The notes: generated from the letters alone by a model not told the origin. DNA of 64,000 bases from Squalus acanthias (GCA_030390025.1 CM059445.1:12028001-12092000), one strand, 5' to 3'; shown: positions 15,868 to 53,073, counted from the first letter of the stretch. Numbers and translations: made by a program.

Positions 15868-16091
15868 GAAAATGCTGGAAATACTCAGCAGGTCAGGCAG
15901 CGTCTGTTGAGCGAGAAACAGAGTCAACATTTCAGATCGATGACCCTTCGTCAGAACTTTCTGACAAAGGTTCATTGACCTGAAACGTTAACTCTGTTTC
16001 TCTCTCTCCACAGATGCTGCCTGACCTGCTGAGTATTTCTAGCATTTTCTGTTTTTATATCAGATTTCCAGCATCCGCAGTATTTTGCTTT
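15868..16091. mobile_element. Palindromic Penelope pseudo-LTR remnant
   Basis: Inverted arms about 15868-15957 and 15959-16049, matching the Penelope terminal sequence at 47966-48070. Confidence 0.8.
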
Positions 16092-16159
16092 GTGACTATT
16101 TACGGAATTGTCTGAATGTAGCGGGAAGTTACCCCCCGAACTTGCTTTCCCATTTCCAG

Positions 16160-16507
16160 GTGCCAGCGTTCAGCTCGAAACCCCCGCAGAAATTCTGCAC
16201 CTTCCCCGTTCAGAGATTCCTGGAGGAGTACTTGCCCGACAAGCTGAGGGGCGTCTCTTACGGCCCAGCCCTCGCTGGCAGGCTGGCGAAAGAAATGAGC
16301 GAGGAAATTAAGGAATTTGCGAAGGGGGCTCTGCCACCCAGGTACAAGCTGGTGTGCATCGTGACGCTGGGCGAGAGGAGAAACGAGGACGCCCTGCTGA
16401 CCAGCCGCGCTCTCTGGGACTCCCACGCCGACACCTTTGTTTCGCACTGTTACGAGAACGGCACCGTGTTCTGTGCGGCCAGCATCTTTGCCGTGTACTG
16501 CGAATGA
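16160..16507 (+). CDS. Tctex-type dynein light chain (DYNLT4/DYNLT5-like), last coding exon with the whole Tctex-1 domain
   Basis: PPRYKLVCIVTLG...SRALWD...DTF...YENGTVFC...AVYCE* is the Tctex-1 family signature; acceptor ttgctttcccatttccag ends at 16159; the first 25 codons of the listed ORF are intronic. Confidence 0.93.
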   Translation: MPAFSSKPPQKFCTFPVQRFLEEYLPDKLRGVSYGPALAGRLAKEMSEEIKEFAKGALPPRYKLVCIVTLGERRNEDALLTSRALWDSHADTFVSHCYENGTVFCAASIFAVYCE

Positions 16508-28376: not shown

Positions 28377-28439
28377 CTATGCTGTTGTTGTGTTATAGCC
28401 TCTGGCTCTGTAAATGTTTTCGTAAACGGCATCACTCGC
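28377..28439 (-). CDS. Ig-superfamily receptor exon 8, cytoplasmic 3 (ASDAVYENIYRARGYNTTTA*)
   Basis: Branch point CACTAAC and acceptor ttttcatttctctttaag, phase 0; TAG at 28379-28377; donor AAG|GTAAGC 6 nt after the stop. Confidence 0.8.
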   Translation of the reverse strand, partial: ASDAVYENIYRARGYNTTTA

Positions 28440-28712
28440 CTTAAAGAGAAATGAAAAGCAGAGGTTAGTGAGGCGCACTGGTCCGGAGTCTAGCTGGTGC
28501 AGTGTGTTGCTATTTCCTTCAGTAGCAGTCACTAGACCTGGACCCTAGATCACACGGGGGCTGGAGGGCTTCCCCAGTGGCTGCTAAAGATCTATTTTAA
28601 TCGACTTCTCTGTGATAAGGAAGAAAATTCCTTAACATTCAGTTAATGGAGAGGAACACAGAATGGATTCAAGTTTCCCAGAACTTGCAGAGTAAAAGTG
28701 AAGGAAGAACAA

Positions 28713-29858
28713 ATAAGAACATAAGAATTAGGAGCAGGAGTAGGCCCTACGGCCCCTCGAGCCTGCTCCGCCATTCAATAAGATCATGGCTGATCTTCGA
28801 CCTCAACTCCACTTTCCCGTCCAATCTGCATATCCCTTGAGTCCCTTCATCCAAAAATCTATCGATCTCAGCCTTGAATATACTCAACGACTGAACATCC
28901 ACAGCCCTCTGGAGTAGAGAATTCCAAAGAGTCATAATCCTCTGAGTGAAGAAATTTCTCCTTATCTCAGTCCTAAATGGCCAACCCCTTATCCTAAGAC
29001 GATGCGCCCCCTAGTTCTAGAATCTCCAGCCAGGGGAAACACACTCCAGCCGTGGGAAACAGCCTCTCAGCATCTACCCTGTCAGGCCTTCTCAGAATCT
29101 TAGGGGGTAAAAATTGGGTAGCGCCCCCTTTGGGGTGCTACCTTCGCCGGGGCGCTAATTTTAGCGCCCCGAAAAAGTTAGTGCCCCTGCAGCCGATTTT
29201 CTCAGGTAGCGCTGCGAACCAATATCGCGGCACGTTGCGCCGCAGTACTGCAGGCCTTCCTCCCCTTATTAAAGGGGAGGGGCCTGGCGCAGCGCATCCC
29301 GGTGCCCAGCTGGGCCACCAGGAATCGGGAGTGCCGGCAAACGAGCCTGGCACTCAAGAGGAGTGCCGGGCTCACGGAGAGCAGCCGGCACCCCGCAGGG
29401 AGACTTCACGGGGGCCGGGGACAGCAACGGGGGCAGATGCTGGCAGGCGGCCAGCAACAAAAATGGCCGCCCGCCACCTCCCCTTTAACTAGCGCCGCCC
29501 CAGCCGCAGGTAGGCCCCCCCTGACCCCGGTGGACATAGCGTCTGGCGGTAAGTCGGGGGGCGCTACCCAATGTTACAGCCGGGGCCCAGGCGCTAGTTG
29601 ATTTGCACACAGTTAGCGCCCTAGGGCGCTAACGTGAGGCGCAAATCAACCAAATTTAGCCCCCTAGATGTTTCAATGATATCACCTCTCATTCTTCTAA
29701 ACTCTAGAGAATATAGGCCTAGTCTACTCAATCTCTCCTCATAGGACAACCCTCTCATCCCAGGAATCAATCTAGTGAACCTTCGTTGCACCCACTCTAA
29801 GGCAGGTATATCCTTCCTCAGGTAAGAGACCAAAGCTGTACACAGTACTCCAGGTGAG
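28713..29858 (-). mobile_element. CR1 3' fragment interrupted by a Harbinger-like MITE
   Basis: CR1 peptide and tail on the minus strand. Confidence 0.9.
29104..29664. mobile_element. GC-rich PIF/Harbinger-like MITE, internally deleted copy of the 20887-21616 family
   Basis: Same termini; 3-bp target duplication TAG (29101-29103, 29665-29667). Confidence 0.8.
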
Positions 29859-30289
29859 GTTTTTTCTTTCCAGGCTAAAGAAATGGGTCAGATTCCTCTG
29901 GAGAAATACAGCTTGGGTTTCCATGGAGGTTTACATCACGGTATACGGGTAGCACTGAACACAAATCAGACAACCCGCACCCCCCAAAAACGCTACACAA
30001 TCCACACCCCACTCCTGATCATCATCCAGAACCAACCCACCCACACCTCAAGCATCGTCTCCTTTCCACCGACCCCCAACGCGAATAATGCACCCAAGAC
30101 ACACCCTGTTGAATACCATATCCACACTCATACCCACTCCCTGCACACACTCTCCCTGCGGGTGAGCTGGTCCCAGCCTCTTCTGAAGCTGTCTCCAGCT
30201 GCTTGGAGACACCCAGCCACACGCGCCGGGACCTGGCAGCACCGCTGCCCCGTTCCTGCACCCATCAGATTGTGCCTGCTGCGAGTTAC

Positions 30290-30367
30290 CTTTTCCTGGG
30301 CGCTGGGTTCCTCAGGATCGTTTCTTTTCAGAGTGTCATAAACATCAGCGGTGGGATGTGAGGGCAC
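30290..30367 (-). CDS. Ig-superfamily receptor exon 7, cytoplasmic 2 (VPSHPTADVYDTLKRNDPEEPSAQEK)
   Basis: Acceptor cttttctcccttttaag, donor AAG|GTAACT, 78 nt, phase 0/0, contains YxxL. Confidence 0.85.
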
Positions 30368-31654
30368 CTTAAAAGGGAGAAAAGCATAACCACTAGGGAG
30401 TCATTCTGAATCATGGCCTTGACATAGTTACATCAGTGAGCGGGCGTCCCATGGGCACATCTGTAGCTTTCCGGAACGGGCAGGACAGGTACAGGCTGAG
30501 GTGTAACTCCATGTTGTTTCCCTGCCACTCCTTACCCTGTCCCGTCCGTACTTCTCGCCACTTCCTGTTCACCTGAGTAATGGGCTTAATCCCATGGTGC
30601 TGGAGAGAGGGATTGGTCCCTCTCACGGTGGGCAACAGAAGCCCCAAGACTCACTCCCTATCCAAAGGAAAGAAAACAGAGGTTGAGCTGTGTTGAGCGT
30701 CGACCTCCAACGACACCACTGCCCTGACCTCAGGGTTACAGAGGGGTGACCTCAACAATGGAAACATGCGCTGCTACTGGGAATGGGACTGCAGGGCAAC
30801 GGAGCAGACTTGGCTCCCCCAAACAGATCCGCAGATAACTGTACCAGAGACGTACAGACCAGGAGGTTCCGAGGTTCCATCCCCACTTTGTGATGTCTCA
30901 GCTGATCACAGTCCAGGCAGGGAAGCTCTAATAGCCCCAGCACTCCTGAGTTAAGCAGTGGGGAAATACAATTAAAAAATCAGCTCTTGATCGCATTCAA
31001 GTGACTTGTTCTGGAAGATGAGTCTGTGTGGACATCAAGTGATTCCAAGATCATATTTAGCTGTGATTTCCACCGCCCCCCCCGCCCCACTCTCCCCTCC
31101 ACAACAACTTGCATTTATATAGCGCCTTTAATTTAGTAAAATGCCCCAAGGCGTTTCACTGGGACGATTATCAAACAAAATTTGACACCGAGCCACATAA
31201 GGAGAGATTAGGGCAGGTGACCAAAAGCTTGGTCATAGAGGTAGGTTTTAAGGAGGGTCAGAAAGGAGGAGAGAGAGAGGCGGAGAGGTTTAGGAAGGGA
31301 ATTCCAGAGCTTAGGCCGCCAATGGTGGAGTGATGAAAATTTGGGAGGCGCAAGGAGCCAGAATTGGAGGAGTGCAGAGATCTCGGAGGGTTGTAGGGCT
31401 GGAGGAGGTTACAAAGAAAGGGAGGGGCGATGCCATGGAGGAATTTTGAAATCGAGGTGTTGCCGGACCATGGTCAAACAACTTTCCAACGTTTACTGTC
31501 TCGGTTAGCATGTGAAAAATGACCACTCGGTGTGTCAGCTGTGGCTCAGTGGGTAGCACTCTTGCTTCTGAGTCAGAAGGTTGTGGGTTCAGGTCCTGCT
31601 CCAGAAACTTAAGCACAAAAATCTAGGCTGACCCTCCAGTGCAGTGCTAAGGGA

Positions 31655-33325
31655 AAGGAATTTACAGTAGAGGAAGAGGGTAGCATGCCAGAAATCCCAA
31701 GAAACCTAATATTGGGACAGGGACTCAATAAAATTAACGTAAGTAAAATAACTAATGAAGAAAATAATGGCACTAAAGAGTGACAAATCCCCAGGGCCAG
31801 ATGGTTTCCATTTCAGGGTTTTAAAGGAAGCATGCGAGCACATTGCTGATGCCCTAACTATAATCTTCCAAGGTTCTCTTGATTCAGGAACCGTTCCTTT
31901 AGATTTGAAAATTGCGCATGTCACTCCGCTATTTAAGAATGGCGAGAGAAGGAAACCAGGGAATTATGGACCAGTTAGCCTAGTTTTGGGGAAATTGCTA
32001 GAGTCTATAATTTAGGATAGGGTGACTGAACACCTCAAAAATTTTCAGTTGATCAGAGAGAGCCAGCATGGATTTGTGAAAAGTAGGTCATGCCTGACAA
32101 ACCGGATTGAATTTTTTGAAGAGGTGACTAAAGTAGTGGACTGGGGAATGTCTTTGGATGTTATTTATATGGACTTCCAGAAGGCATTTGATAAAGACCC
32201 ACATAAGAGACTGTTATCTAAGGTAGAAGCCCATGGAATTGAGGGCAAATTATTGGCCTGGTTAGGAAATTGGCTGAGCGGCAGGAGACAAGCAATAAGG
32301 GTAAAGGGTAGGCACTCAAATTGGTAGGATGTGACTAGTGGTGTCCCGCAGGGATCTGTGTTGGGGCCTCAACTATTCACAGTATTTATTAACGCTTAGA
32401 TGATGGCATAGAAAGTCATATATCCCAATTTGCCGATGACACAAAGATAGGCAGCATTGTAGACAGTGTAGATGAAAGCATAAAATTACAAATGGATATT
32501 GATAGATTAAGTGAATGGGCAAAACTGTGGCAAATGGATTTCAATGTAAGCAAATGCGAGGTCATCCACTTTAGACCTAAAAAGGATAGAACAGGGTACT
32601 TTCTAAATGGTGAAAAGCTAAAAACAGTGGATGTCCAAAGAGACTTGGGGGTCCAGGTACATAGATCATTAAAATGTCTTGAACAGATACAGAAAATAAT
32701 TGAAAAGGCTAATGGAATGCTGGCCTTTATATCTAGAGGACTAGAGTACAAGGGGTAGAAGTTTTGCTGCAGCTATGCAAAGCCCTGGTTAGACCACACC
32801 TGGAGTACTGTGAGCAGTTCTGGGTACCACACCTTAGGAAGGATATATTGGCCTTGGAGGGAGTGCCAGTTTATCAGAATGATACCCGGACTCCAGGGGT
32901 TAAGTTACGAGGAGAGATTACACAAATTAGGGTTGTATTCCCTGGAATTTAGAAGGTTAAAGGGTGATCTGATCGAAGTTTTCAAGATATTAAGGGGAAC
33001 AGATAGGGTAGATAGAGAGAAACTATTTCCACTGGTTGGGGATTCTAGGACTAGGGGGCATAGTCTAAAAATTAGGGTCAGACCTTTCAGGAGTGAAATT
33101 AGGAAACACTTCTACACACAAAGGGTGGTAGAAGTTTGGAACGCTCTTCTGCAAATGCTAGATCAATTGTTAATTTTAAATTGGAGATTGATAGCTTTTT
33201 GTTAACTTCTGGTATTAAGGGATATGGGGCAAAGGGATATGGAGTTAGGTCACAGATCAGCCATGATCTCATTGAATGGCGGAACAGGCTCGAGAGGCTC
33301 AATGGCCTCCTCCTGTTCCTATGTT
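31655..33325 (+). mobile_element. CR1 RT-3' fragment inserted in a plus-strand Deu-SINE (31531-31650 and 33335-33700)
   Basis: KSPGPDG, QHGF, DFQKAFD peptides with stops; SINE halves flank it. Confidence 0.9.
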
Positions 33326-34059
33326 ACTTTGTTCCTATGCAGTACTGAGGGAGTGCTGCACTGTTGGAGGTGCTGTCTTTTGGTTGAGACATTAAACCGA
33401 GGCCCCGTCTGCTCTCTCAGGTGGATGTAAAAGATCCCATGGCACTGTTTTGAAGAAGAGCAGGGGAGTTCTCCCCGGTGTCCTGGCCAATATTTATCTC
33501 TCAATCAACATCACAAAATCAGATTATCTGGTCATTATCACATCGCTGTTTGTGGGAGCTTGCTGTGCGTAAATTGGCTGCCGCGTTTCCCACATGACAA
33601 CAGTGACTACACTTCAAAAAGTACTTCCTTGGCTGTATAGCGCTTTGGGATGTCTGGTGGTCGTGAAAGGCGCTACAGAAATGCACGTCTTTCTTTTTCC
33701 CTTTCTCAGTTGAGGTACCTCGGTGACCAGCGTTGTGCAACTGTGCCTCAGTGAAAGTCGATGGGTGGGTTGGGGGGCGGGGAACGGGATGAAAACGGAC
33801 GATAAAACCCAGTAAAGCCACATTCTACAGGAGCTGTGTGCGATCACAGAAGAGCAGGTACTTGGTATTAAGGACAATGGACTCAATGCAATCTTCCTCA
33901 TGGAACGCGTCTTCAGCATGGTCGTCCCATGATTGTAGCACAGGGAATCAGAGGGGCAATTAAAGGAATTTCACTGATTGCAGCCAACATCTGGATATCC
34001 ATGGGGCTCCCACTGCGTTCCCTCAATCACATACACACAACTCTCACGTTCATGCTCAC

Positions 34060-34113
34060 CATGTAAACCGGTTCCTCCTCCTGCCGCCCTCTCGCTCTGC
34101 ACTTGCTTACGAT
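34060..34113 (-). CDS. Ig-superfamily receptor exon 6, cytoplasmic 1 (IVSKCRARGRQEEEPVYM)
   Basis: Acceptor ctccctctttcag, donor ATG|GTGAGC, 54 nt, phase 0/0; supplies the basic stop-transfer residues after the TM. Confidence 0.85.
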
Positions 34114-34509
34114 CTGAAAGAGGGAGACCAACGATGACTGACAGATTTGTCCGACCACCGCTTAATTGTAAACAAGAAGGGCGAAAGGCTGGAGCTACCC
34201 AGCAGGTCAGGCAGCATCTGTGGAGCAACAGACGTCGGTCACCGTCGAGGTTGTAGCTCTGGAGGACACCTGAGCAAGGGTCTGAGGACCTCAAGCGTCG
34301 AACGACTGAGTCTGTTTCTCCAGCAGATGCTGCCTGACCTGCTGAGTGTGTCCAGCCTGGCCTGTTTCAGATTTCCAGCACCTGCAGTCATATTACTTTC
34401 TACTCATGGGCTTCCCCGAAAAAGGTGCAGTTATTCCAGAAGCAGGTTGGTAGCAGGCTCTGATCGGGAGCAAGTGGCGCTCTAAAATAAAAGTCAGTGA
34501 GGTACTTAC

Positions 34510-34601
34510 AACACATGTGGCGATGGATGTCACAATGATCAGGAGAAGCCCAGCACCGACACTGAGCACAATGACCAGCAAATTGCGGTTGTCGATTTCA
34601 T
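34510..34601 (-). CDS. Ig-superfamily receptor exon 5, transmembrane (NEIDNRNLLVIVLSVGAGLLLIIVTSIATCV)
   Basis: Acceptor tgtttgtgttgcag (phase 1), donor GTT|GTAAGT (phase 0), uncharged hydrophobic helix. Confidence 0.9.
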
Positions 34602-35448
34602 CTGCAACACAAACAGGAATTTAGGAGAAACCTCTTTACCCAGAGAGTGGTGAGAATGTGGAACTCAGTACCACAGGGAGTGGTTGAGGCGAATAGTATA
34701 GATGCATTTAAAAGGAAGCTAGATCAACACGTGAGGGAGAAAGGAATAGAAGGTGAGGCTGATAGGGTGAGATGAAGAGGGGTGGGAGGAGGCTCGTGCG
34801 GAGCATAAACACCGGCATGGACCAGTTGGGCCGAATGGCCTGTTTCTGTGCTGTACATTCTGTCATTCTATGTATTACAAAGTATTTGTAGTATCTGGTT
34901 CTTTTGCCAATTCTCTTAAATCTCTGTCTTCTGGTTACCGACCCTTCTGCCAGTGGAAACAGTTTCTCCTTATTTACTCCATCAAAACCCACTAGCAATT
35001 TGAACGCCTTCATTAAATCCCCCCTTAACCTTAAGTGTATGTTTGCGCATGCGTTGGATGAGAGCCGCGTTGGGTTCGACTTTGGGATTGTTGGCCCTTC
35101 ATTGTTGAACTGCCTGCCAACACGCACCATGATAACTGATCCTTGGTACCGGAGCGTGTCCAGTGCACATGGAACTGCTACACGGCAACAAAAAAAATCA
35201 GCGCTTTTGGGAAGAAGGGAAGAGAAACATGAAAAGAAAAAAAAAACCAACAAAACAACAAACAAAATCTTGTGTCCAATTCTGGGCACCACACTATGGG
35301 GAAAGAGCAGGGGGAGTGGACCTAATCAGTAGCTCTTTCAGAGAGCCAGCGCAGACATGATGGGCTGAATGGCCTCCTTCTGTGCTGTAGGATTCTACGA
35401 TTCTATGAAAATCTCGAGATGTCTTTGGTACAAAGCTAAGGTACAAAC

Positions 35449-35715
35449 TGGTTATCACAGTGACCACCACCGTGGCCTGTCTCGTTCCCAGCTTGTTCTT
35501 TGCGGAGCAGACGTAGGTCCCCTGGTCGCTGGATGAGATGTTCTCCACCCTGATACTCAGGCGATTCGTTTTCATGGTCAGCAAAGCCTTTCCATTTAGG
35601 AGCCAAGTCATTTCGGCTTTCGGGTTGCTATTGACCATGCATGTCAGCTCGAGCAGGTCACCTGTTATCTTCACAGTATTGTTCCCTGGTTCCACCCTAA
35701 GATGTACAGGGCCAT
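35449..35715 (-). CDS. Ig-superfamily receptor exon 4, C2/I-set Ig domain
   Basis: YGP...LTC...SNP...W...DQGTYVCSAKN pattern; acceptor ttttaacag phase 1; phase-1 donor A|GTTTGT is weak, so the 3' boundary is less certain; 267 nt. Confidence 0.9.
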
Positions 35716-35720
35716 CTGTT

Positions 35721-36045
35721 AAAAGAAAGAAAGACTTGCATTTATATAGCGCCTTTCACAACCTCAGGACATCCCAAAGCACTTTACAGCCAATGAAGTA
35801 CTTTTCAAGTGTAGCCTCTGTTGTAATGCAGGAAACACGGCTGCCAATTTACGCACAGCAAGATCCCACAAACAGCAACGTGATAATGACCAGATAATCT
35901 GTTTTTTTGTCATATTGAGTGAGGGATAAATATTGGCCAGGACACCGGGGATAACTCCCCTGCTCGTCTTTGAATTAGTGCCATAGGATCTTTTACGTCC
36001 ACCTGAGAGGGCAGACAGGGCCTCAGTTTAATGTCTCATCTGAAA
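35721..36045 (-). mobile_element. Deu-SINE (5'-truncated) abutting the exon 4 splice acceptor
   Basis: SINE body and (TTTC)n tail end directly before TAACAG. Confidence 0.85.
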
Positions 36046-36196
36046 GAAAAGAGCATCGTAAAAGACACAAACAAAAAATCATGTTAAACTCCCCCCAGAT
36101 TAAAATTTACCTGAAACGGTAGATAGAAGGAACGTACTCTAGCTTAGTGGGCAGAATCACTGGCCAGCATGGTGCTGACCCAAACAGACCAGAAGG

Positions 36197-36518
36197 TCAC
36201 AGAATCACAGAATCCCCACAGTGCAGATAGAGGCCATTTCGGCCCATCGAGCCTGCACCGACACATATCCCACCCGATCCCCGTAACCCCACGTATTTAA
36301 TCCCCCCTAACACACTAAGGGTCAATTTATCATAGCCAAATCAACCTAACCCGCACATCTTTGGACTGTGGGAGGAAACCGGAGCACCCGGAGGAAACCC
36401 ACGCAGACACGGGGAGAATGTGCAAACTCCACACAGACAGTCGCCCAAGGCCGGATTCGAACCCGGGTCCCTGGCGCTGTGAGGCAACAGTGCTAACCAC
36501 TATGCCACCGTGTTGCCC
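36197..36518 (-). mobile_element. HE1-type V-SINE
   Basis: Reverse complement of the head and V-domain seen at 2065-2350. Confidence 0.85.
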
Positions 36519-37311
36519 CAGACGGTCCTCGTCTGTCTGATGCCTGCCCTGTGCCGAGTTAGCCAATCCCAGCTAGGGCAATGGTAAGGGTGCCGGAATT
36601 GGCCTCAGTGCCCCTTAGCTAGGAAATGGAAAATGGTTCCTCATCACTTTCCAGCAATTGCTGCTGTCACAGCGTATGTATGCGGACATGGGGAGAGGAT
36701 CAGGCTTGGCTATGGTTGGATAGCCTGCTGCTGCTCACTGTCCAGGGCCACTCGTGAAGAATGGCCACTCCGCCCAGATCATAGAATCTTATTAGCGCAG
36801 AAGGAGACCATTCGGCCCGTTGTGCCTGTGCCGGCTCTTTGGTCGAGCTATCCAATTGGTCCCACTCCCCCCTGCTCTCTTTCCCCATAGTCCTGCAAAT
36901 TTCTCCTTTTCAAGTAGATATCCAGTTCCCTTTTGAAAGTTATTACTCAATCTGCTCCCCTGCCCTTTCAGGCAGCGCATTCCAGATCATAACTCGCTGG
37001 GTTAAAAAGAAGCTAGAAAATGCATGGTGCATGTCCAGGTCTAGCCCAGCAAGGAGTCAGCACCTTCAGGGAAGGAGAAAGAACATAAGAACATAAGAAA
37101 TAGGAGCAGGAGTCGGCCATTTGGCCCTTCAAGCCTGCTCCGCCATTCAATAAGATCATGGCTGATCTTCTACCTCAACTCCACTTTCCTGCACTGTCCC
37201 CATATCCCTTGATTCCCTTAATATTCAAAAATCTATCAATCTCTGTCTTGAATATACTCAACAATGACTGAGCCTCCACATCCCTCTGGGGTAGAGAACC
37301 CTCTGGGGTCC

Positions 37312-38900
37312 TCCACACTATTACTGCAAATTTGGTTTGCCCAGTCTGTATGTAGATTGAAGACCCTCATGATTACTGTATTACCCTTGTTACATGCGCC
37401 TCTAATTTCCTGATTTATACTCTGCCCTGCATTACAACTACTGTTTGGGGGTCTATGAACAACTCCCACCAATGTTTTCTGCCCCTTGCTGTTTCTTAGC
37501 TCTACCCAAACTGATTCTACTTCTACTTTTTCCATTTTGCCGATCTCTTCTAAAAGTTAAGTATCCTGGAATATTTTGTTCCCAACCTTGGCCACTTTGC
37601 AACCATGTCTCCGTTATGGCTATTCGATCAAACCTGTTAAATTCTATCTGCGCTATTAATTCATCTATTTTGTTGCGAATGCTTCGTGCATTCAGATACA
37701 GTACTTTTAGCTTTGACTTATTTCTATTTTTCCCTGATGTCACCTTAGTCACTGATGCCTTATTACCTTTGTTACTCTATCTGTTCCTTCCTGACACACT
37801 GCTTATTTTTACCCAAAACTCTATTCTGTTCTAGAGCCTTGACATTTCTCTCACTGCTTTTAAATTTACTCTTTCCTGAATCCTCCCACCCGCCTTCGTT
37901 AGTTTAAAGCCCTGTCTACTGTCCTAGTTATTCGGGTCGCCAGGACACTGGTCCCAGCCCGGTTTATGTGGAGCCCGTCCCAACGGAACAGCTCCCTCTT
38001 TCCGCAGTACTGGTGCCAGTGCCCCATGAACTGAAACCCCTTCCTCCCACACCACTCTTTGAACAACACATTTAAACCTCTAAACTGTTGGTCCCTATGC
38101 CAATTTGTGTGTGGCTCAGGTAACAATCCAGAGATTATTACCTTTGAGGTTCTGCTTTTTAATTTGGATCCGAGCTCCTCAAACTCCCTCAGCAGAACCT
38201 CATTCCTAGTTCTACCTAGGTCTTTGGTTCCTCTGTGGACCACGACAACTGGATCCTCCCCCACCCACTCCAAGTTCTTCTCCAGCCGTGAGGAGATGTC
38301 TTTAACCCTGGCACCGGGCAGGCAACACAACCTTCGGAACTCTCGGTCGCGGCTGCAGAGAACAGTATCTATCCCCCTGACTATACTGTCCCCTACCACA
38401 ACTACATTCCCTTTCACTCCCCCCACTTCAGTGGCCTCCTGCGCTATGGTGCCATGGTCAGCTTGCTCATCCATCCTGCAGGCTTTTCCCTCATCCACAA
38501 AGGCAGCAAGAATCTCATACCTGTTGGACAAGGGCAAAGGCTGAGGCTCCACCAGCACTGCACCTGGGGTCCCCTTACCTGCCCGAGTTGCAGTCACACC
38601 CTCCCGTCCCTGACCACTAACCAGACCTGTACCACTACCTAACCTAAGGGGTGTGACTGCCTCCTGGAGCAAAGTGTCCAGGTAACTCTCCCCATCCCTG
38701 ATGCCCCGCAATGTCTGCACCTCAGACTCCAGCTCAAAAACTCTGAGCTGAAGTTCCTCAAGATGCAGGCACTTACTGCAAACGTTGTTGTCCGGGATCA
38801 CCATGCTCTCCACAAACTCCCACATGCTGCAGTTGCGGCACACCACCTGCACTGCCATCCCTATATGACCTTGTTTTATTTAATTAAATTTATTTAAATT
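37312..38900 (-). mobile_element. CR1 5' portion: open ORF1 (37899-38858, 319 aa) and broken endonuclease
   Basis: CxxC...CxxC zinc finger and SGNH esterase motifs (GDSIVRG, CLPGA, DGLH), followed by LYLNARS endonuclease. Confidence 0.93.
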
Positions 38901-39451
38901 TGTATTCAGGTAACTTAGTTTACAGTGTAGTTTCTTGACTACTTACTTGATCTAGATTAAGTTTTTTTTTATTCGTTTATGGGATGTGGGCGGTGCTTAA
39001 AGGCCAGCATTTATTGCCCATCCCTAATTGCCCTTGAGAAGGTGGTGGTGAGCTGCTTTCTTGAACTGCTGCAGTCCGTGTGGTGAAGGTACTCCCCCAG
39101 TGCTGTTAGGGAGGGAGTTCCAGGATTTTGACCCAGCGAAAATGAAGGATCGGCGATATCCTTCTAAGTCAGTATGGTGTGTGACTTGGAGGGGAACTTG
39201 GAGGTGGTGGTGTTCCCATACGCCTGCTGCCCTTGTCCTAAGTTATGGGTACTGAAATTAAATATCTACCTATAACACAAAGCACTACAAGTAGTGTAGG
39301 CAAGAAGCAACAACTCCTTCCCCCTCTTCTCCGAATTCCCACTCTTTCCAAATTCCCAAATAAAACACACTGTTCAAGTCCACTCTGTTTAATCCCACTC
39401 TGTGCAGGAAAAGTGTTTTGTTGCCAGATGATCTGGCTGTACATTACTTAC

Positions 39452-39748
39452 ATGAAACCTCGAGCTTTTGAGACTTCAATATCTTCACAGATTGGTGAGT
39501 GATCTGGCAAGTAATTGTTTTACCGTGGTCTTTTATCTGTGGTTCAAATGGAACTGTGGACGTAGCATTGAAAGTTCCATCTCTGTTCGTGTCGACAGAT
39601 AACTGAACTCCTTCTCGGAGCTGAGTCCCGTCCTTCAGCCAATCCACTGTAATCTGTTTTGGGTAAAATCCAATCACTCTCAAACTCAGTGTCGTGGACT
39701 TCTTCGCCTCGAGTTGGGGCACTTCCAAAATCTGATAAATTGGTCTAG
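39452..39748 (-). CDS. Ig-superfamily receptor exon 3, C1-set Ig domain
   Basis: GFYP-I-V-W-KDG, NRDGTF and TC-I-H C1-set hallmarks; acceptor ttgttctttaag, donor T|GTAAGT, phase 1/1, 297 nt. Confidence 0.93.
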
Positions 39749-40937
39749 CTTAAAGAACAAATGGGAAAAGTATCATTGAAATACTCTGCCACAACAGGAG
39801 GAATAATGAAGTCAGACTTGTGCTATCGGCTCATATATTTGTAATTAATTACGTACATGGTTTGTATTTAAGTACATTCATACTTCAAAAAAATTGAGAA
39901 CAAATATTTGTTCTTTTGTCACGCCTATCGTTCTCCTCTCTCATCCCATGCTGTGCTGAAGGTATTAACTCATGTCGGACGATAGTACGAAGACTGCCGT
40001 GCCTCACTGGCCCCTCACCCACATAGCCATGTGAAGGCCTAGACTTGCATTTATATAGCGTCTTTAACAGAGTAAAATGTCCCAAGGCGCTTCACAGGAG
40101 CGATTATCAAACAAAATGTTGACACCGAGCCACCGAAGGAGATATTAGGACAGGTGACCAAAAGCTTGGTAAGTTTTAAGGAGGGTCTTAAAGGAGGAGA
40201 GAGAGGTGGAGAGGTTTAGGGAGGGAATTCCAGAGCTTAGGGCCGAGGCAGCTGAAGACACGGCCGCCAATGGTGGAGCGATGAAAATCAGAGATGCGGA
40301 AGAGGCCAGAATTGGAGGAGCGCAGAGATCTCGGAGGTTGTAGGGCTGGAGGAGGTTACAGAGATAGGGAGGGGTAACCAGGAGTCCGCTGCCATTCCCC
40401 CCTCCCAGTCAGAGATTCCAAGGTTCCTATCGTCCCCGTCTCCAGCTGTTAACAACTAACGCAGGACAGGCCAGAGATCGAAGCCTGGACTTTCCAAGTC
40501 TGTATCACTCAGCTACTCACTGTGTAAATTCGCTGAGACATCGGGGAGCCAGGAGCCTGCCCCAGGTTGAAAGGGCAGTCAGCTGACCCACCCCCAGGAG
40601 CCTGATAAGCCTGCTCATAAACCCCTCCGAAAACAAGCAAGAGGCAATCTCGGCAGCGGGACCACTTTTCAAAATCAAATGACGACAAAAGCATCCCCAA
40701 TTCCTGCACGGCAAATGCATCACTCAATCAGCTACTGAGCCACGCAGACTGAGAAGGTGCCAGGTTTTATCCCTGGTCTGTGTCAGGTTAGCGCATCTGA
40801 GCTGCAGTTGGCCTTAGCGCTCTGGGTCAGGAAGGTCAAGTCAAACAAACCTCCCACGCCCGCCCCTGATTGCCCTCCGGTGAGGCCTGCTGCAAAGCGC
40901 GTGTGGACGTTGGGTGAAAACTGGATTGGGCTGAACT

Positions 40938-41372
40938 TTTGAGTCAGAAGGTTGTGGGTTCAAGTCCCCACTCCAGAGACTTGAGCACAAAAATCTAGGC
41001 TGACGCTCCAGTGCGGTGCTGAGGGAGTGCTGCACTGTCAGAGGTGCCGTCTTTCGGATCAGACGTTAAACCGAGGCCCCGTCTGCTCTCTCAGGTGGAA
41101 GTAAAAGATCCCATGGCACTATTTCAAAGAAGAGCAGGGGAGTTCTCCCTGGTGTCCTGGCCAATATTTATTCCTGAATCAACATCACTGAAACAGATTA
41201 TCTGGTCACTATCACATTGCTGTTTGTGGGAGCTTGCTGTGCGCAAATTGGCTGCCGCGTTTCCTACATTGCAGCAGTGACTACACTTCGTAAAGTACTT
41301 AATTGGCTGTAAAGCGCTTTGGGACGTCCGGTGGTCGTGAAAGGAGTTATAGAAATGCAAGTCTTTCTTTTT
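40938..41372 (+). mobile_element. Deu-SINE; further copies 51120-51576 (-), 54596-55030 (+), 58935-59345 (+), 60068-60472 (+)
   Basis: Same consensus as 3095-3548. Confidence 0.85.
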
Positions 41373-41684
41373 TTCCCCCAACTTCAAATAGCCCTTCTTG
41401 GGATCACATGAGTTTCCACGTGGACTCGGTACAGCATCAGACGGTCCATTTACTCACCGAGACATTGGGCAGGAGCCCCGAGGTGTTTCCACTGTGATGA
41501 GCACTTGACCAAGAGCCCAATCTCAGCCCGTGTTCGATGGACACCAGCCATCACTGTCGGACAATCACCAATATCCAATCACTCTAGGGTAAGTGACCCG
41601 CTTTGTTTCCTACGTTGCAAGCCCCTCCCCCCATCCAATTGCACACCCTCTATGGGGACTTGTTTTCAACAGACCAGCACCCAC

Positions 41685-42071
41685 CTTTGAGAAACAGCTG
41701 TGTTACATCAGGCTCAATTGTAACGGCTCCCTTTATAGGGAAAGCTGAGACACAGAAATAGAATCCAGCATCTGTCACTTGCAATTTTTTGATTTGGAGC
41801 TGTGCCGTGAACAAGGAACTCGTAGAACTTGATAAAAAACGATTGCCTAGCAGAAGGATCTTGCCGTTCTTTTGGCCTTCAGATTGTTTGTAATATTGCC
41901 AATTCACAGTATGTAGCTGAGGTAACTCCTTGCGGAAGTTAATTGTGTTCATTTTCGGTTCCAAAGTCGGCTTCAGGCTAGACTCTGCATACTTGCAGGT
42001 GATTGTCACGTCCTTATCCATTAAGCCGTGGACTTGCTTCATACGTATTTTGTTGTTGCTGCTACTTACAC
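41685..42071 (-). CDS. Ig-superfamily receptor exon 2, V-set Ig domain
   Basis: VTITC...RF...AQLQIKKLQVTDAGFYFC V-set pattern; acceptor attgttttccag then (G)VSS, donor AAG|GTGGGT, phase 1/1, 387 nt. Confidence 0.92.
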
Positions 42072-42242
42072 CTGGAAAACAATTTTAAAATACACAAGGG
42101 AATGTCATGGGCATTTCAAAACAAAAATGGATTCGCTCCAATTACCTGTGAAGGGTTAAGAAAACCGCTGGAGAAAGTGTGGACCTAAACGGTCAGGTGA
42201 CCACAATCAGTGACCTCCGCATTGCAGCGCAAGGCACGTCGG

Positions 42243-43232
42243 CCCGCAAGGACCAGTGCTTGGGCCTCAACGACTCACAATCTACGTCAATGATTTGGAT
42301 GAGGGGACCAAATGTGATATATCCAAGTTTGCTGATGATACAAAGCTGGGTGGGAATGTAAGTTGCGAGGAGGCTTCAAGGGGGATACAGACAGGCTCAG
42401 TGAGTGGGTGAGAACATGGCAAATGGAATATAATGTGGAGAAATGTGAAGTTATTCCACTTTGGTAGGAAAAATAGAAAAGCAGAGTATTTTTTAAATGG
42501 CGAGAGATTGGGAAATGTTGGTGTTCAGAGGGACCTGGGTGTCCTTGTACACGAATCACTGTAAGTTAACATGCAGGTACAGCAAGCAATTAGGAAAGCA
42601 AATGGTATGTTGGTCTTTATTACAAGAGGATTTGCGTATAAGAGTAAAGACGTCTTACTGCAATTATATAGGGCCCTGGTGAGACCACACCTGGAGAATT
42701 GTGTGCAGTTTTGGTCTCCTTACCTAAGGAAGGATGTACTTGCCATAGAGGGAGTGCAATGAAGGTTCACCAGACTGATTCATGGGATGGGGGGGATTGT
42801 CCTATGAGGAGAGATTGAGTAGACTAGGCCTATATTCTCTGGAGTTTAGAAGAATGAGAGGTGATCTCATTGAAACATACAAAATTCTTACAGGACTTGA
42901 CAGGATAGATGCAGGGAGGATGTTTCCCCTGGCTGGGGAGTCTAGAACCAGGGGTCACAGTCTCAGAATAAGGGGTCGGCCATTTAGGGCTGAGATGAGG
43001 AGAAGTTTCTTCACTCTTGGGAATTCTCTACCCCAGAGGGCAGTGGAGGCTCAGTCATTGAGTGTATTCAAGACAGAGATCGATAGATTTTTGAATATTA
43101 AGGGAATCGAGGGATATGGGGATAGTGCAGGAAAGTGGAGTTGAGGTCGATGATCAGCCATGATCTTATTGAATGGTGGAGCAGGCTCGAGGGGCCGAAT
43201 GGCCGACTCCTGCTCCTATTGCTTATGTTCTT
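42243..43232 (+). mobile_element. CR1 RT-3' fragment; similar fragments 44957-46180 (-), 49225-50165 (+), 55250-56053 (+), 56763-57728 (-)
   Basis: FADDTK to LIETYKI peptides and CR1 tail. Confidence 0.9.
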
Positions 43233-43700
43233 AACTTGCCATCAAGGTGACGGCGAACTGGCAGCGTTCGCCTGTCATTTCGCCTTTGAAACTGACGGCA
43301 ACTTCAGGATTTAGCGCATGCTCAGCTTAGTACAGAAATCCTGAAGTTGCGGTCTGTCATTCACTGCTCCTCCACAGGCTTCGCTGTGTCACCCTCCGCT
43401 CCCCACCTCACAGAGCCGGCAATCAGTGAAATCTCTCAAATCAGGAAAACTGATGAAAACTTCGGCTCTTCAGCGGTGCGTATGCTGTTAAATACCCCAT
43501 TAAAGGTTAGACCCAAATGGATTAGGTGTAACTGGGGTTTTAACAGTGTATTGACTGCTAAACAAAGGTTATGGGCCTGAAAAACTCATTTTAATTTTGC
43601 GCAGTGTCAAATTTATCCATTTTAATAACGTTTTAATTTTTAAGAAACTTTTTTAAAAAATTGTTAATTTTCTTTTAAAGCTTGTTCATCTTTATTTGAG

Positions 43701-43901
43701 AAGTCGCACAACACCAGGTTATAGTCCAACAGCTTTATTTGAAATCACAAGCTTTCGGAGCGCTGCTCCTTCGTTCACTTCACCTGACGAAGGAGCAGCG
43801 CTCCGAAAGCTTGTGATTTCAAATAAAGCTGTTGGACTATAACCTGGTGTTGTGCGACTTTTCACATTTGTCCACCCCAGTCCAACACCGGCATCTCCAC
43901 A
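43701..43901. mobile_element. Young palindromic Penelope pseudo-LTR insertion
   Basis: Perfect inverted arms 43701-43774 and 43787-43860; 15-bp target duplication TCATCTTTATTTGAG (43686-43700, 43902-43916). Confidence 0.8.
43780..43816 (+). ncRNA. Minimal type-I hammerhead ribozyme motif (Penelope-associated)
   Basis: TCAC-CTGACGA-A-GGAGC-agc-GCTCC-GAAA-GCTT-GTGA: intact CUGANGA/GAAA core, stems I and II, palindromic stem III. Confidence 0.7.
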
Positions 43902-44076
43902 TCATCTTTATTTGAGGTTTGCCTTTCTTTGTTTTTGCTCTCTAACATTTTTTTAAAAGTTAGAATTTTAAGAGCTGACTCACTTCCTGGCTCGCTGCCT
44001 GTGAGAATTCTGCATTCCGATTGGCTGCTCAGACAGTCTGTTGACATCACAGCAGCTCGCGTTAGGGGATCCCCAC

Positions 44077-44304
44077 TGACGTAAGAAAACTACTAGGCAC
44101 TTGGTCTGAGTATTAAACAAGCTTTAATCAACTGTTTTTCAACATGGAGATCTAGTTGTGTCCTTCACTAGTTCCTGTTAAAGAATGTCCTGAGCAAGCT
44201 GGGCCCATGCCCGAGTATTTATACTCTCCCTGGACAGCGCCACCAGCAGGCCGCCCAGTATTATTTCATAAGTCATTTCCACATGAATGACAAGATTCAT
44301 GTCA
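44077..44304 (-). mobile_element. Solo LTR, copy 1
   Basis: TGAC...GTCA termini, TATAAA and ATTAAA on the minus strand, 5-bp target duplication CCCAC. Confidence 0.85.
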
Positions 44305-47046
44305 CCCACTATACTAGGTTGATTGAATTACACGTCGGAAAACCTGAACTCCTTGACACAGAGATCGCGAGATCTTTGTGGGAAGCTTACTTCGGGGCCA
44401 GCCGCGAGCACTTTTGCTTTGCCGCTGACCGCAAATTCCGGGCCATCATCTCATTGGCCTCAGGAATGACCCTACAATCCAATAGCCTGCCCACACTCAT
44501 CGTCTGGACTCACACATGGTCACTTTGCTAAGGTAAGGGACAGATAGCAGTGCCCAGCAGTCAACCCCTGCAGGAGAGCAGGGCAGGAAAATCTGTTAAC
44601 AAAAAAAAAAGTGAACTAAATCGATCACCGGCAATTCTCGACAGCACAGTCTCCAACTACACGCAACTTGTGTTGTTAACGCACTCCTTCTGTGCAGGGC
44701 AGGGAGCTGCCTCAGAGTGCTTTGCAGGGCAGCGAACAAATAGAAGGGAAAAGGGGTAGCTACGGGGGCAAAAACGTGGTTAAAAAGAGGTCTTAAAGAG
44801 GCTTTTGAAGTCAAGGAGGGAGGCAACAAGGAAGAAATGCTCAGCGAGGATAGTGGGAAACATTGTGCCCGAAAGAGTAGCTTCCCATGGGTGGAATGGA
44901 GAGAGTGGGAAACAATGAGTTAACTAGGGTTGGAGGACCAGAAAGTATATGGACAGAAGAACATAAGAAATAGGAGCGGGAGCAGGCCATTCGGCCCCTC
45001 GAGCCTGCTCCGCCATTCAATGAGATCGTGGCTGATCTGATCTTGGCCTCAACTCCACTTTCCCGCCCGATCCCCATAACCCTTGACTCCCCCTATAGTT
45101 CAAAAATCTGATTTTCTCAGCCTTGAATATATTCACTGACTCCGCCTCCACAGCTCACTGGGGTAGAGAATTCCAAAGATTCACAACCCTCTGAGAGAAG
45201 AAATTCCTCCTCATCTCTGTCTTAAATGGGTGACCGCTTATCCTGAAACTATGCCCCCTAGTTCTAGATTCCCCCACGAGGGGAAACATCCTCTCAGCAT
45301 TTACCCTGTCAAGCCCCCTCAGAATCTTATATGTTTCAATAAGATCACCTCTCATTCTTCTAAACTCCAATGAGTATAGGCCCAACCTGCTCAACCTTTC
45401 CTCAGAAGACAACCCTTTCATCTCAGGAATCAACCTAGTGAACCTTTGCTCCAATGCAAGTATATCACTCCTTAAATAAGGTGACCAAAACTGTACGCAG
45501 TACTCCAGGTGTGGTCTCACAGTTGTAGCAAGACTTCCTTACTTTTATATTCCATCCCCCTAGCAATAAAGGCCAACATTCAATTTCCCGCCTAATTACT
45601 TGCTGTACCTGCATGCTAACTTTTTGTGTTTCATGTACGAGGACACCCAGATCTTTCTGTACCGCAGCATTCTGTCGTCTCTCTCCATTTAAATAATATT
45701 TTGCTTTTCTATTCTTCCTACCAAAGTGGATGACCTCACATGTTCCCACATTATACTCCATCTGCCAAATTTTTGCCCATTCACTTAACCTATCTATATC
45801 CCTTTGCAGACTCTTTGCCCTCCTCACAACTTGCTTTCCCACCTATCTTTGTTCATCAGCAAATTAGGCTACAGTACACTCGGTCGCTTCATCCAAGTCA
45901 TTAATATAGATTGTAAATAGTTGAGGCCCCAGTACTGATCCCTGTGGCACCCCACTAGTTACAGTTTACCAACCTGAAAATGACCCATTTATCTCGACTC
46001 TGTTTTCTGTTGGTTAGCCAATCCTCTATCCATTCCAATATATTACCCCCAACCCCGTGGGCTCTTATCTTGTGCAGTGACCTTTTATGCGGCACCTTAT
46101 CGAATGCCTTTTGGAAATCCAAATACACTACATCATCTGGTTCCCCTTGATCCACCCTGCTCGTTACGTCCTCAAAGAACGCTTGCAAATTTGTATTTAT
46201 ACAGCGGGAGGAGATCGTGGAGTTGGGGCGCCTTGAGGCGATGGAGAAATTTGAAGGCGTGGACAAGAATTTTGAAGTGAACTTGCCGATGACGAGAGTG
46301 CCACCTTTACTGTGGGACAGGACATGGACTGCAGGCGAGTCTTAACTCGTGAAGGGTGCAGGCCAGCAAGGAGAGTGTTGGAGAAGTTAAGCCTTGTGGT
46401 AAGGGTTTCCACAGCAGGCAGGGTGAGGTCAGCAGAGGTAGATGATGTTTTGGAGGTAATGGATTGGATATGGGAGCCCGCTCTGACCGCAAAGCCCAGC
46501 AGTACACTAAGGTTCCATACTTTTGAGCTTAACCTTGGATGTCAAGGGTTGAAGCTGGAGGTGAGTAGGTCTTTGCAGGAACTGAAGTGGATAGTTTTTC
46601 TTTCTCCCAACTTTTAGCTGGAGGAAATTAGTCTCCGGCAGGTCTTGGCACTCATTGCATTACCACATCCTTTTTTGCATAAATCATATCACTGCATATA
46701 AATACTAAAGATCACCAAAAGGCGCGAGTGAAATGAGAAGAAAGAATAAAAATAAAAGCAATCAAAATGTGCGAGGCAAAATGCGATCTCCCCTCCCTCA
46801 CAGAGCAGTTGGACAACCAGTTCAACCCAACACACTTCAGTCTTATTCCCAGAGTAAACCCACTCCTTAAACACACAAGGAAAGGATCTGGGGGCTCACT
46901 CAGCCAGTTTAAGATCAGCAACTGTCCATTCTTGGGTATAAATTTCAACCAACATGCTCTCCATGACCCAAACTTCACTGACAACTGACACACTGATGCA
47001 CGAGAGGCAAAGAGTACACAAGAAAGTCAAAATGTAATTTGTGTAC

Positions 47047-47110
47047 CTGCAAAATAAAGGCCAGTGAGAGTCAAGTGCCAAACCAACAAGGAGAGACCTG
47101 GACGATTCAT
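47047..47110 (-). CDS. Ig-superfamily receptor exon 1, signal peptide (MNRPGLSLLVWHLTLTGLYFAG)
   Basis: ATG with A at -3, hydrophobic core, 64 nt ending in phase-1 donor CAG|GTACAC; joins the V exon as FAG-VSS. Confidence 0.8.
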
Positions 47111-47569
47111 GTTGCTTTGCTGATTTCTTCCCTTCTCCAATGCGACTGTGTGTCATGCGCCTCCACAGGAAGAGAGAACATCTGTGATGGTGCAATTTTA
47201 CTGTATTTCTTCCCTTGTGCAATAGGATAGGATTGCGTGAAACAGTGAGACCTTGTTGCTTTATTTCCCACCATCTGTACAGTTTTTAAATGCAGTTGGA
47301 ATGTGTCTCATTTCGGACAGCCGCTGGACTCCGAGCTTTGTTTCGTCCTCCCAAAGCCGACGATGGTGGAACAATGGAGGCCACATATACCTTCACAACC
47401 AGCAGCGATCTCAACAAGGTCTCACTGTATAACACAATCCTATCCTATTGCACAAGGGAAGAAGGACAGTAAAATTGCACCATCACAGAGGTTCTCTCTT
47501 CCTGTGGAGGCGCATTACACACAGTCACTTTGTAGAAGGCAAGAAATCAGCAAAGCAACGTGAATCGTC
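47101..47569. repeat. Inverted repeat, about 158-bp arms (47101-47258, 47412-47569) around a 153-bp spacer
   Basis: Arms align as reverse complements along their length with scattered mismatches; no target duplication seen. Confidence 0.9.
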
Positions 47570-51847: not shown

Positions 51848-53073
51848 GAACATAAGAACATAAGAAATAGGAGCAGGAGTAGGCCAATCGGCCCCTCGAG
51901 CCTGCTCCGCCATTCAATAAGATCATGGCTGATCTGATCCTAACCGCCAATCTACTATCTATCACAGAACCATCTCCTGCATCTAACAGAATTGCACACA
52001 CGAATTAGGAGCAGAATCAGGCTACACAGTCCCTGGGCCCGCTCCACTACCCACAGGGCCATGACCGATCCGAACCTAGACTCATGTCCAAATTCCTGCC
52101 CGCTCCCCGTAACCCTTAATGCCCTTTACTTCTAGGAAACTGTCTATTTCTGTTTTAAATTTAATTAATGTTGTAGCTTCTACAGCTTTTTGTGGCAGCA
52201 TATTCCATGGACCTACCACCCTCTGAGTGAAGTAGTTCCTCCTCATCTCAGTTTTGAAAGAGCAGCCCCTTATTCTAAGACTATGTCCCCTAGTTCTCGT
52301 CTCACCCGTCATCGGGAACATCCTCCCCGCATCCACCCGATCCAACCCCTTCACAATCTTATATGTTTCAATAAGATCGCCTCTCATTCTTCTGAACTCC
52401 AATGAGTAGAGTCCCAATCTACCCAACCTCTCCTCATATGACCACCCCCTCATCCCCGGGATTAACCGAGTGAACCTTTTTTGCACTGCCTCGAGAGCAA
52501 GGATGTCTTTCCTTAAGTAAGGACACCAAAACTGTATGCAGTATTCCAGGTGCGGTCTCACCAATACCTTGTACAACTGAAGCAATACCTCCCTATTTTT
52601 ATATTCTATCCCCCTAGCAATGAAAGCCAACATTCCATTTGCCTTCTTAATCACTTGCTGCACCTGCATACTAACCTTTTGAGTTTCGTGCACCAGGACC
52701 CCCAGATCCCTTTGCACTTCAGTACTCTCCAGTTTCTTGCCATTAAGATAATAAATTGCTCTAGGATTTTTCCTGCCAAAGTGCATCACCTCACACTTTC
52801 CAGTGTTGTATTCCATCTGCCAAATCTCTGCCCACTTACTTAGCCTGTCTATGTCCCCTTGCAGGTTTTTTATGTCCTCCTCACTCACTACTTTCCCTCC
52901 CATCTTTGTATCATCTGCAAATTTTGATATGTTACACTTGGTCCCTTCCTCCAAATCGTTAATATAGATTGTGAAGAGTTGGGGACCCAGCACTGACCCC
53001 TGTGGAACACCACTAGTTACTGATTGCCAGTCTGAGAATGAACCATTTATCCCAACTCTTTGCTTTCTGTTAG
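51848..53073 (-). mobile_element. Young CR1 3' fragment with uninterrupted RT C-terminal frame
   Basis: ORF 52082-52993, 303 aa without stops; CR1 tail at 51848. Confidence 0.93.

Follow-up and report, generated by a model that had tools for sequence, protein, structure and literature searches.

A gene for a non-rearranging V-C1-I protein of the immunoglobulin superfamily with a conserved tyrosine tail in Squalus acanthias and other sharks

The 64,000-nucleotide (nt) stretch of the Squalus acanthias genome analysed here (GCA_030390025.1 CM059445.1:12028001-12092000; hereafter the window, whose own coordinates are used throughout) carries on its minus strand, between positions 47110 and 28377, eight exons that join into one reading frame. 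The encoded protein belongs to the immunoglobulin superfamily (IgSF) and is composed of a signal peptide, a V-set domain, a classical C1-set domain, an I-set domain, a transmembrane helix without charged residues and a tail, about 64 residues long, with conserved tyrosine motifs. We consider it probable, at roughly 70%, that the eight exons form an intact gene whose product is a type I membrane protein, that this gene is the counterpart of genes predicted in other sharks, and that the product signals through its own tail. The gene belongs to an unnamed and mislabelled group of shark orthologues, the kind of protein being well known: a non-rearranging type I IgSF receptor with tyrosine motifs.

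The gene was analysed exon by exon, both in searches and in comparisons. Exon 1 (47110-47047, minus strand, as are all the others; 64 nt) starts with ATG and encodes the signal peptide in 21 codons plus one nucleotide, ending in phase 1 at a GT donor. The three immunoglobulin (Ig) domains occupy one exon each, as assigned by translation and by Pfam: the V-set domain is encoded by exon 2 (42071-41685, 387 nt), the C1-set domain by exon 3 (39748-39452, 297 nt) and the C2-like I-set domain by exon 4 (35715-35449, 267 nt). Exon 5 (34601-34510, 92 nt), which matches no Pfam family, encodes a stalk and the transmembrane segment and ends in phase 0. The tail is distributed over three small exons, each with one conserved tyrosine. 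Exon 6 (34113-34060, 54 nt) encodes a basic, cysteine-bearing juxtamembrane stretch and the first tyrosine (EEPVYM), with an intron after the residue that follows it (Y+1); exon 7 (30367-30290, 78 nt; VPSHPTADVYDTL...) encodes the second, in a YxxL motif seven residues past YMVP; exon 8 (28439-28377, 63 nt; ...AVYENIY...) encodes the third, in a YxN motif, and then a TAG stop. Read exon by exon on the minus strand, the eight exons total 1302 nt, i.e., 433 codons and the stop. Every exon translated singly is open, the junctions are canonical (AG at 7/7 acceptors, GT at 7/7 donors), and the intron phases 1-1-1-1-0-0-0 are consistent with the entry phases 0, 1, 1, 1, 1, 0, 0 and 0. The motifs GFYP, WLKDG and NRDGTF lie in exon 3 and YGP...C..SNP...W in exon 4, cysteines are found at the end of the transmembrane segment and in SKC, and the tail holds YMVP, YDTL and YENI. 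An earlier note on this DNA, made from the sequence alone, had proposed these exons with their lengths, matching phases and named motifs, and the sequence bears it out on all of them.

The same note had described the product as a non-rearranging V-C1-I type I protein with its own tyrosine tail, and this description stands. The J motif FGxG is absent from the translation of the V exon, and the window yields 0 heptamer-spacer-nonamer matches of the kind that would form a recombination signal sequence (RSS). No heptamer abuts the V exon, the sole nearby one lying about 195 nt into the intron. No further Ig exon was found in the window by a six-frame scan of open stretches of at least 45 amino acids (aa) for the motif [DEQNST]x[GAS]xYxC, which picked up exon 2, exon 4 and three chance matches outside Ig domains.

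The gene is real and conserved because each of its exons matches predicted proteins of other sharks, always in the same order: exons 1-6 match all seven proteins, exon 7 six of them, and exon 8 two, since the C-termini differ. Scoring of the V exon against 1.84 billion representatives gave 28 matches at E <= 0.001. Three were specific (433, 360 and 365 aa; E values of 2.4e-22, 3.0e-22 and 9.4e-11); these are models of Cetorhinus maximus (XP_078387599.1, named 'cell adhesion molecule 3-like'), Pristiophorus japonicus ('Siglec 8') and Heptranchias perlo (XP_067829186.1, 'Siglec 14'). The other matches span only 19-57 residues of the query and fall in 21 proteins of 1,400-6,300 aa, each with several such stretches, and in 4 proteins of 355-900 aa. 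A search with the Cetorhinus protein retrieves models from six shark species, Cetorhinus itself among them (Heptranchias is known from the V-exon search), and so adds models from Carcharodon, Scyliorhinus, Heterodontus and Mustelus, together with a 460-aa Pristiophorus isoform. Counterparts are predicted in at least seven other sharks, in RefSeq or UniRef, under borrowed automatic names that read 'cell adhesion molecule 1/3-like' or 'sialic acid-binding Ig-like lectin 8/12/14'. The seven full-length models were aligned, and all family counts out of eight given below add the window exons to this alignment. All seven have the V, C1 and I domains, the transmembrane segment and the tail, and those of Cetorhinus and Scyliorhinus are 433 aa long, as is the window protein.

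Identity to the seven shark proteins is 52-76% for the signal peptide (over their residues 1-21), 38-49% for the V exon (best E 1e-32), 46-63% for the C1 exon (best E 3e-35), 56-70% for the I exon (best E 1e-40) and 52-71% for the transmembrane exon. Exon 6 is 50-78% identical in 6/7, Mustelus matching over the last 5 residues only, and exon 7 is 58-77% identical in 6/7 (best E 8e-12), the Mustelus X2 model ending earlier. Exon 8 is 70% identical to the C-terminus of the Pristiophorus protein and 38% to that of Heterodontus. The identities for whole V and C1 domains come from exon-wise comparison, the exon ends being misaligned in the alignment (length range up to 258).

The shark models lie on one contig each or on none, with one locus per species in the searched collection. 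Nothing, then, points to an expanded group of genes, and the 'family' of receptors suggested in the earlier note is not supported in that sense. Its word 'undescribed' holds in part: no description of the gene was found in open-access text, although the supplementary gene tables of papers on the shark major histocompatibility complex (MHC) and UrIg may list it, yet RefSeq and UniRef already hold predicted models from seven sharks. Its attribution to cartilaginous fish was likewise too broad. A profile of the seven proteins, searched against the 8000 candidates with the most shared words, retrieved members from sharks and none from rays, skates, chimaeras or carpet sharks, so that a range across cartilaginous fish is unproven. 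As far as found, the family appears confined to selachian sharks, and the seven relatives span five shark orders, galeomorphs and squalomorphs both being included.

Some variation within the family was seen in passing. In Pristiophorus japonicus, exon 7 (…VYDTLKRDEPKEPSAPAK) is tandemly duplicated, which gives a second YDTL, and isoform X2 of this species lacks the C1 domain, with no C1-set among its Pfam families, as expected if a phase 1-1 exon is skipped. Four lamniform or carcharhiniform species have an extra cysteine in an insertion of the V domain (…KQC… or …RC…) together with another just before DGTF/DGSF in the C1 domain, and the other four sequences of the family have neither. The paired cysteines could form an inter-domain disulfide or could reflect a single shared ancestral change.

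Exon 2 is assigned to the Pfam V-set (1.4e-6, 28.9 bits vs a cut-off of 26). In the window protein the domain keeps its B- and F-strand cysteines and has a BC loop of 31 residues. Indeed, the spacing from the B-strand cysteine to the C-strand tryptophan is 30-31 residues in 8/8 sequences, ordinary V domains having far fewer residues between these two positions. Averaged over pairs of sequences, identity falls from 78% in strand F and 61% in strand G to 34% in the BC loop and 18% in the FG loop, the last being hypervariable between species and ranging in length from 7 to 13. The matches of the V exon in the Protein Data Bank (PDB) are generic (ROBO2, a single-chain variable fragment, VNAR; best E 3.7e-6), and chains of Siglec, nectin, CADM, B7 and SIRP are all absent from the 60 best matches listed. 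As judged by these comparisons, the V domain seems to have no specific relative outside the shark family.

The second domain is more easily placed. Exon 3 matches the Pfam C1-set (PF07654) at 1e-14 over profile positions 9-85 of 86, with 55.1 bits vs a gathering cut-off of 21, so that at the sequence level it is the true C1-set domain it had been proposed to be; the second-best family is the CD80-like C2-set_2 (8e-8, 33 bits). The exon carries GFYP, WLKDG, DGTF and the F-strand Cys-x-I-x-His motif. Its PDB matches include UrIg2, whose three matched domains add up to 1.7e-17 with 33.5 bits for the best single one, as well as Ig constant domains, MR1 alpha3, SIRP-alpha domain 3 (1.4e-12) and CD22 domain 2 (5.3e-11). 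The canonical B-F disulfide pair of this domain is broken: the F-strand cysteine is retained in 8/8, and the B-strand cysteine is replaced by leucine in the window and in 6/7 relatives, Heptranchias alone keeping it. Exon 4 matches the Pfam I-set (2.6e-13) and not the C1-set, and its PDB matches include DSCAM, CEA (the best single domain, 28.7 bits), contactins, MAG and CEACAM1.

A lungfish protein hints at a possible origin of such an ectodomain. The gene may have arisen as an offshoot of B7/SIRP-type V-C1 genes that gained its I-set domain and an ITAM-type tail cassette (named for the ITAM, the immunoreceptor tyrosine-based activation motif) by exon shuffling, and that would serve as a counter-receptor in contacts between immune cells. 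The best match of the family profile outside sharks is lungfish LOC122813971 (E 1.4e-40; by hhalign, probability 99.2 and E 1.2e-19 over 256 columns), which itself matches CD276, SIRP-alpha across V-C1-C1, and B7-H6. The C1 exon of the window scores 63.9 blastp bits against a lungfish C1 domain, compared with 33.5 HMMER bits against the best PDB domain, two scores that are not strictly comparable, and the first lungfish C1 domain, by eye, also seems to lack the B-strand cysteine. Moreover, all Ig exons are of phase 1-1, so that shuffling keeps the frame. On the other side, the similarity of the V domain to the lungfish protein is limited to the E-F strands, and the lungfish model looks like several tandem gene models fused. 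Such a descent is unlikely as it stands, if less so than the other alternatives considered here; it concerns origin and is compatible with an intact self-signalling shark gene. The lungfish match by itself hints at kinship with B7/SIRP-type V-C1 genes.

Membership of the SIRP group proper is another matter. The gene shares with SIRP-alpha, B7-H6, CD276 and the lungfish protein a membrane-distal V domain followed by a classical C1-set domain. However, SIRP proteins have a second C1 domain where the window protein has an I-set, so that the V-C1-C1 ectodomain is not found here, and the window V domain resembles B7 in the E-F strands only. SIRP membership was rejected on account of the I-set third domain and of a tail without an immunoreceptor tyrosine-based inhibitory motif (ITIM). 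UrIg and UrIg2 resemble the window gene in being non-rearranging elasmobranch genes with classical C1 domains, UrIg2 being the top PDB match of the C1 exon. UrIg genes are described as having a VJ exon and many C1 domains (PMC12227049), whereas the window gene has a single C1 domain and an I-set and lacks the J motif. Membership of the UrIg group, or of any antigen-receptor-like group, was rejected in view of the missing FGxG, RSS and V-abutting heptamer.

A reading closer to the database names is that the protein is an adhesion molecule of the nectin/CADM type, in which the Ig domains would serve in contacts between cells and YxxL would act in endocytic sorting instead of activation. The order of three Ig domains in CADMs and nectins, i.e., V, C1-like and C2/I, is that of the window gene, and RefSeq labels the models of 4/7 species 'cell adhesion molecule 1/3-like'. 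The Atlas model of the catshark orthologue, a low-confidence one (pLDDT 0.65), lies nearest to CADM1/3-like and nectin-2/3/4 clusters, with TM scores of 0.50-0.55 over 275-294 residues, and the family profile aligns in one stretch with domains 2-3 of nectin-1 (8e-15). Yxx(L/M/V/I/F) is, moreover, defined as an endocytic and ITAM-like motif in PMC2832619. Against this, the likeness lies in the three-domain ectodomain with its C1-like middle domain and does not reach the V exon, which has no nectin or CADM among its 60 best listed PDB matches. Domain 2 is a classical C1-set domain (55 bits) and not a C2-set_2 domain (33 bits), and three tail tyrosines with their x7 spacing are conserved. CADMs and nectins have a C-terminal PDZ-binding motif and a FERM-binding juxtamembrane motif. 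The window C-terminus, ...GYNTTTA, is unlike such a PDZ-binding end, and tyrosine motifs take the place of the FERM- and PDZ-binding ends. CADM/nectin membership was rejected because the V domain is unrelated and the tail different, and an adhesive function of this type seems rather improbable.

Of the five tyrosines in the window tail, three are conserved across species: Y1 in EEPVYM|VP, where the phase-0 intron between exons 6 and 7 splits YMVP after Y+1, Y2 in ADVYDTL and Y3 in AVYENI. Y1 is present in 8/8 sequences, and Y2 and the YxN motif of Y3 in 7/8 each, the exception being the short Mustelus isoform (YxN is found in 6/7 rows of the relatives' alignment and in the window). The distance from Y1 to Y2 is constant, and the family pattern can be written ExxYxx[P/S/C/K]-x7-YxxL followed by YxN, or EEPxY...ADVY[DE]TL...Y[AE]N. 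According to PMC2832619, an ITAM reads (D/E)xxYxx(L/I)x6-8Yxx(L/I), an ITIM [ILVS]xYxx[LV] and the ITSM, or immunoreceptor tyrosine-based switch motif, TxYxx[VI]. The window tail contains neither an ITIM nor an ITSM, the residues at Y-2 of its five tyrosines being P, D, A, N and R. In its E-P-V-Y-M-V-P, 7 residues, Y-D-T-L, the acidic residue and the spacing are those of an ITAM, as is the second half, and the first half departs from it. An ITAM made of YDTL and YENI is ruled out by the 18 residues between them. The legend text of the same source reports a phase-0 intron splitting the YxxL motif in ITAM genes, and an intron of this phase lies within the first YxxL-type motif of the window gene, at YM|VP. 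The tail thus looks like an ITAM-type cassette with a degenerate first half, followed by a Grb2-type site, and not like a canonical ITAM. With no canonical ITAM, ITIM or ITSM in it, the words 'activating' and 'immune' that the earlier note used of the receptor are unproven.

Parallels to this arrangement are seen in CEACAM3-type proteins and the ITAM-bearing CEACAMs of marsupials. They share with the window protein an I-set domain of the 'SNP..W..NG' kind. CEACAMs are not known to have a C1 domain, their N domain lacks the disulfide, and they differ again in the first half of the ITAM, which in the window family lacks L/I at Y+3 in 8/8. The likeness extends to several small phase-0 tail exons, an intron in the first YxxL-type motif and, in marsupial genes, a conserved GRB2-like YxN motif that adjoins the ITAM (PMC2832619). 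CEACAM membership was rejected, at least one defining feature being absent.

What we infer about ligand binding, phosphorylation, partners and cell type starts from the V domain, which would bind a ligand and has a strongly species-variable FG loop and a BC loop, 30-31 residues long, peculiar to the family. The lack of charge in the transmembrane segment argues against pairing with a charged adaptor and hence for signalling through the receptor's own tail. A Src-type kinase would phosphorylate the tail sites, to which SH2 proteins would be recruited, the first two tyrosines acting as a degenerate ITAM and the third as a YxN site for a Grb2-type SH2 domain. The YxxL motif could also serve as an endocytic signal.

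Several findings weigh against a working receptor of this kind. At Y+3, the first motif has P in three sequences, S in three, and C and K in one each, with L/I in 0/8, so that kinases with tandem SH2 domains may not bind. The B-strand cysteine of the C1 domain is absent from 7/8 sequences and the V domain of Pristiophorus lacks both cysteines, each replaced by serine, losses that could mean relaxed constraint. Furthermore, no sequencing run was recorded as RNA; the eight contig sets guessed to be RNA hold 0.23-0.39 of the words sampled from 39452-42071 (0.26 exonic), which is suggestive at most as a sign of expression. The cysteine losses, together with an ATG at the edge of an inverted duplication, would fit a decaying or non-functional gene that is intact only in looks. 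Such decay is very improbable, given 433 open codons, 14/14 canonical splice sites, the conservation of all exons in order in seven other sharks, the good conservation of the F strands, the G strand, the transmembrane segment and the tail motifs, and the fact that the leucine in the C1 domain is itself conserved in 7/8.

The earlier note had also stated that the mosaic matches no receptor it could name, a claim that is not supported. Nectins and CADMs are the nearest look-alikes of the whole ectodomain, and the order of V, C1-type and C2-type domains is known from domains 1-3 of CD22 and Ig1-3 of MAG. CD22 has a V-type domain 1, an 'unexpectedly' C1-type domain 2 and a C2-type domain 3, and MAG has a C1-type Ig2 within the same order. 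The Siglec order (a V-type domain 1, a C1- or C2-type domain 2 and a C2-type domain 3) is found in the window gene by Pfam and by profile alignment. The family profile aligns in a single stretch with domains 2-3 of CD22 (E 9e-20) and with MAG (E 2.1e-27), which share the C1-type domain 2 and the C2-type domain 3. The feature look-alikes of the catshark orthologue include clusters of sialoadhesin, MAG and Siglec-6, and four of the automatic names are Siglec names (8/12/14). In Siglecs, sialic acid is canonically bound by a conserved arginine of strand F (PMC5150538). That the window protein is a Siglec, i.e., a sialic-acid-binding and mostly inhibitory receptor, is nevertheless the least credible of all the alternatives, since the residue after its F-strand cysteine is valine (arginine in 1/8, Heptranchias), its V domain has an ordinary B-F cysteine pair and no Siglec among the 60 best listed PDB matches, the profile alignments to CD22 and MAG start only at domain 2, and the tail has no ITIM or ITSM. 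Siglec identity was accordingly rejected on the absent arginine, the unrelated V domain and the missing ITIM. From CD22 and MAG the window protein also differs in having three Ig domains, where CD22 has seven and MAG five. CD22 also carries a YENV Grb2 site.

With an intact, self-signalling shark gene as the preferred reading, a tentative and rather speculative history can be sketched. The gene might be what is left of an ancient gnathostome line of V-C1 receptors that signal by themselves, a sister line to the B7/SIRP-type genes that lungfish still have. In that ancient line the C1 domain would have become combined with an I-set domain of the CEACAM/Siglec type and with a tail derived from an ITAM. 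A single shark gene would have remained, with a fast-changing FG loop tracking a fast-evolving ligand that is either derived from pathogens or a polymorphic self molecule.

Around the 5′ end of the gene, the window contains an inverted repeat, with arms of 158 nt at 47101-47258 and 47412-47569 that are 92% complementary and have 153 nt between them. The left arm ends 10 nt inside the receptor coding sequence, so that ATG and upstream region exist as two head-to-head copies; the duplicate has GTG in place of ATG and is no longer similar beyond codon 4. The only other non-repeat coding candidate seen in the window is an uninterrupted open reading frame (ORF) of 140 aa at 16085-16507 on the plus strand, with a Tctex-1 family domain (Pfam, 3e-20) and best PDB matches to Tctex2-type dynein light chains (LC2, DYNLT2B), which could be a synteny marker or a retrocopy. 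ORF1 and ORF2 fragments of CR1-like long interspersed nuclear elements are many in the introns and flanks, e.g., at 4188-6954 (plus), 37899-38858 (minus), 52082-52993 (minus) and 61233-63670 (plus), and in intron 3 of the receptor gene an ORF1-like ORF of 319 aa lies on the gene's own strand.

The classical C1 domain is otherwise nearly confined to Ig, the T-cell receptor, MHC and their partners. As classical C1-set domains are a hallmark of the adaptive immune system of jawed vertebrates, each further C1 gene is of help in following the assembly of that toolkit. What sets this shark gene apart is that its classical C1 sequence lacks the disulfide, that its V domain has no specific relative and that its tail appears to derive from an ITAM. 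Its present database names, Siglec and CADM, would mislead the mining of shark genomes for lectins or adhesion molecules. For expression profiling and ligand searches in catshark or dogfish, the gene would be an inexpensive and clearly defined target.

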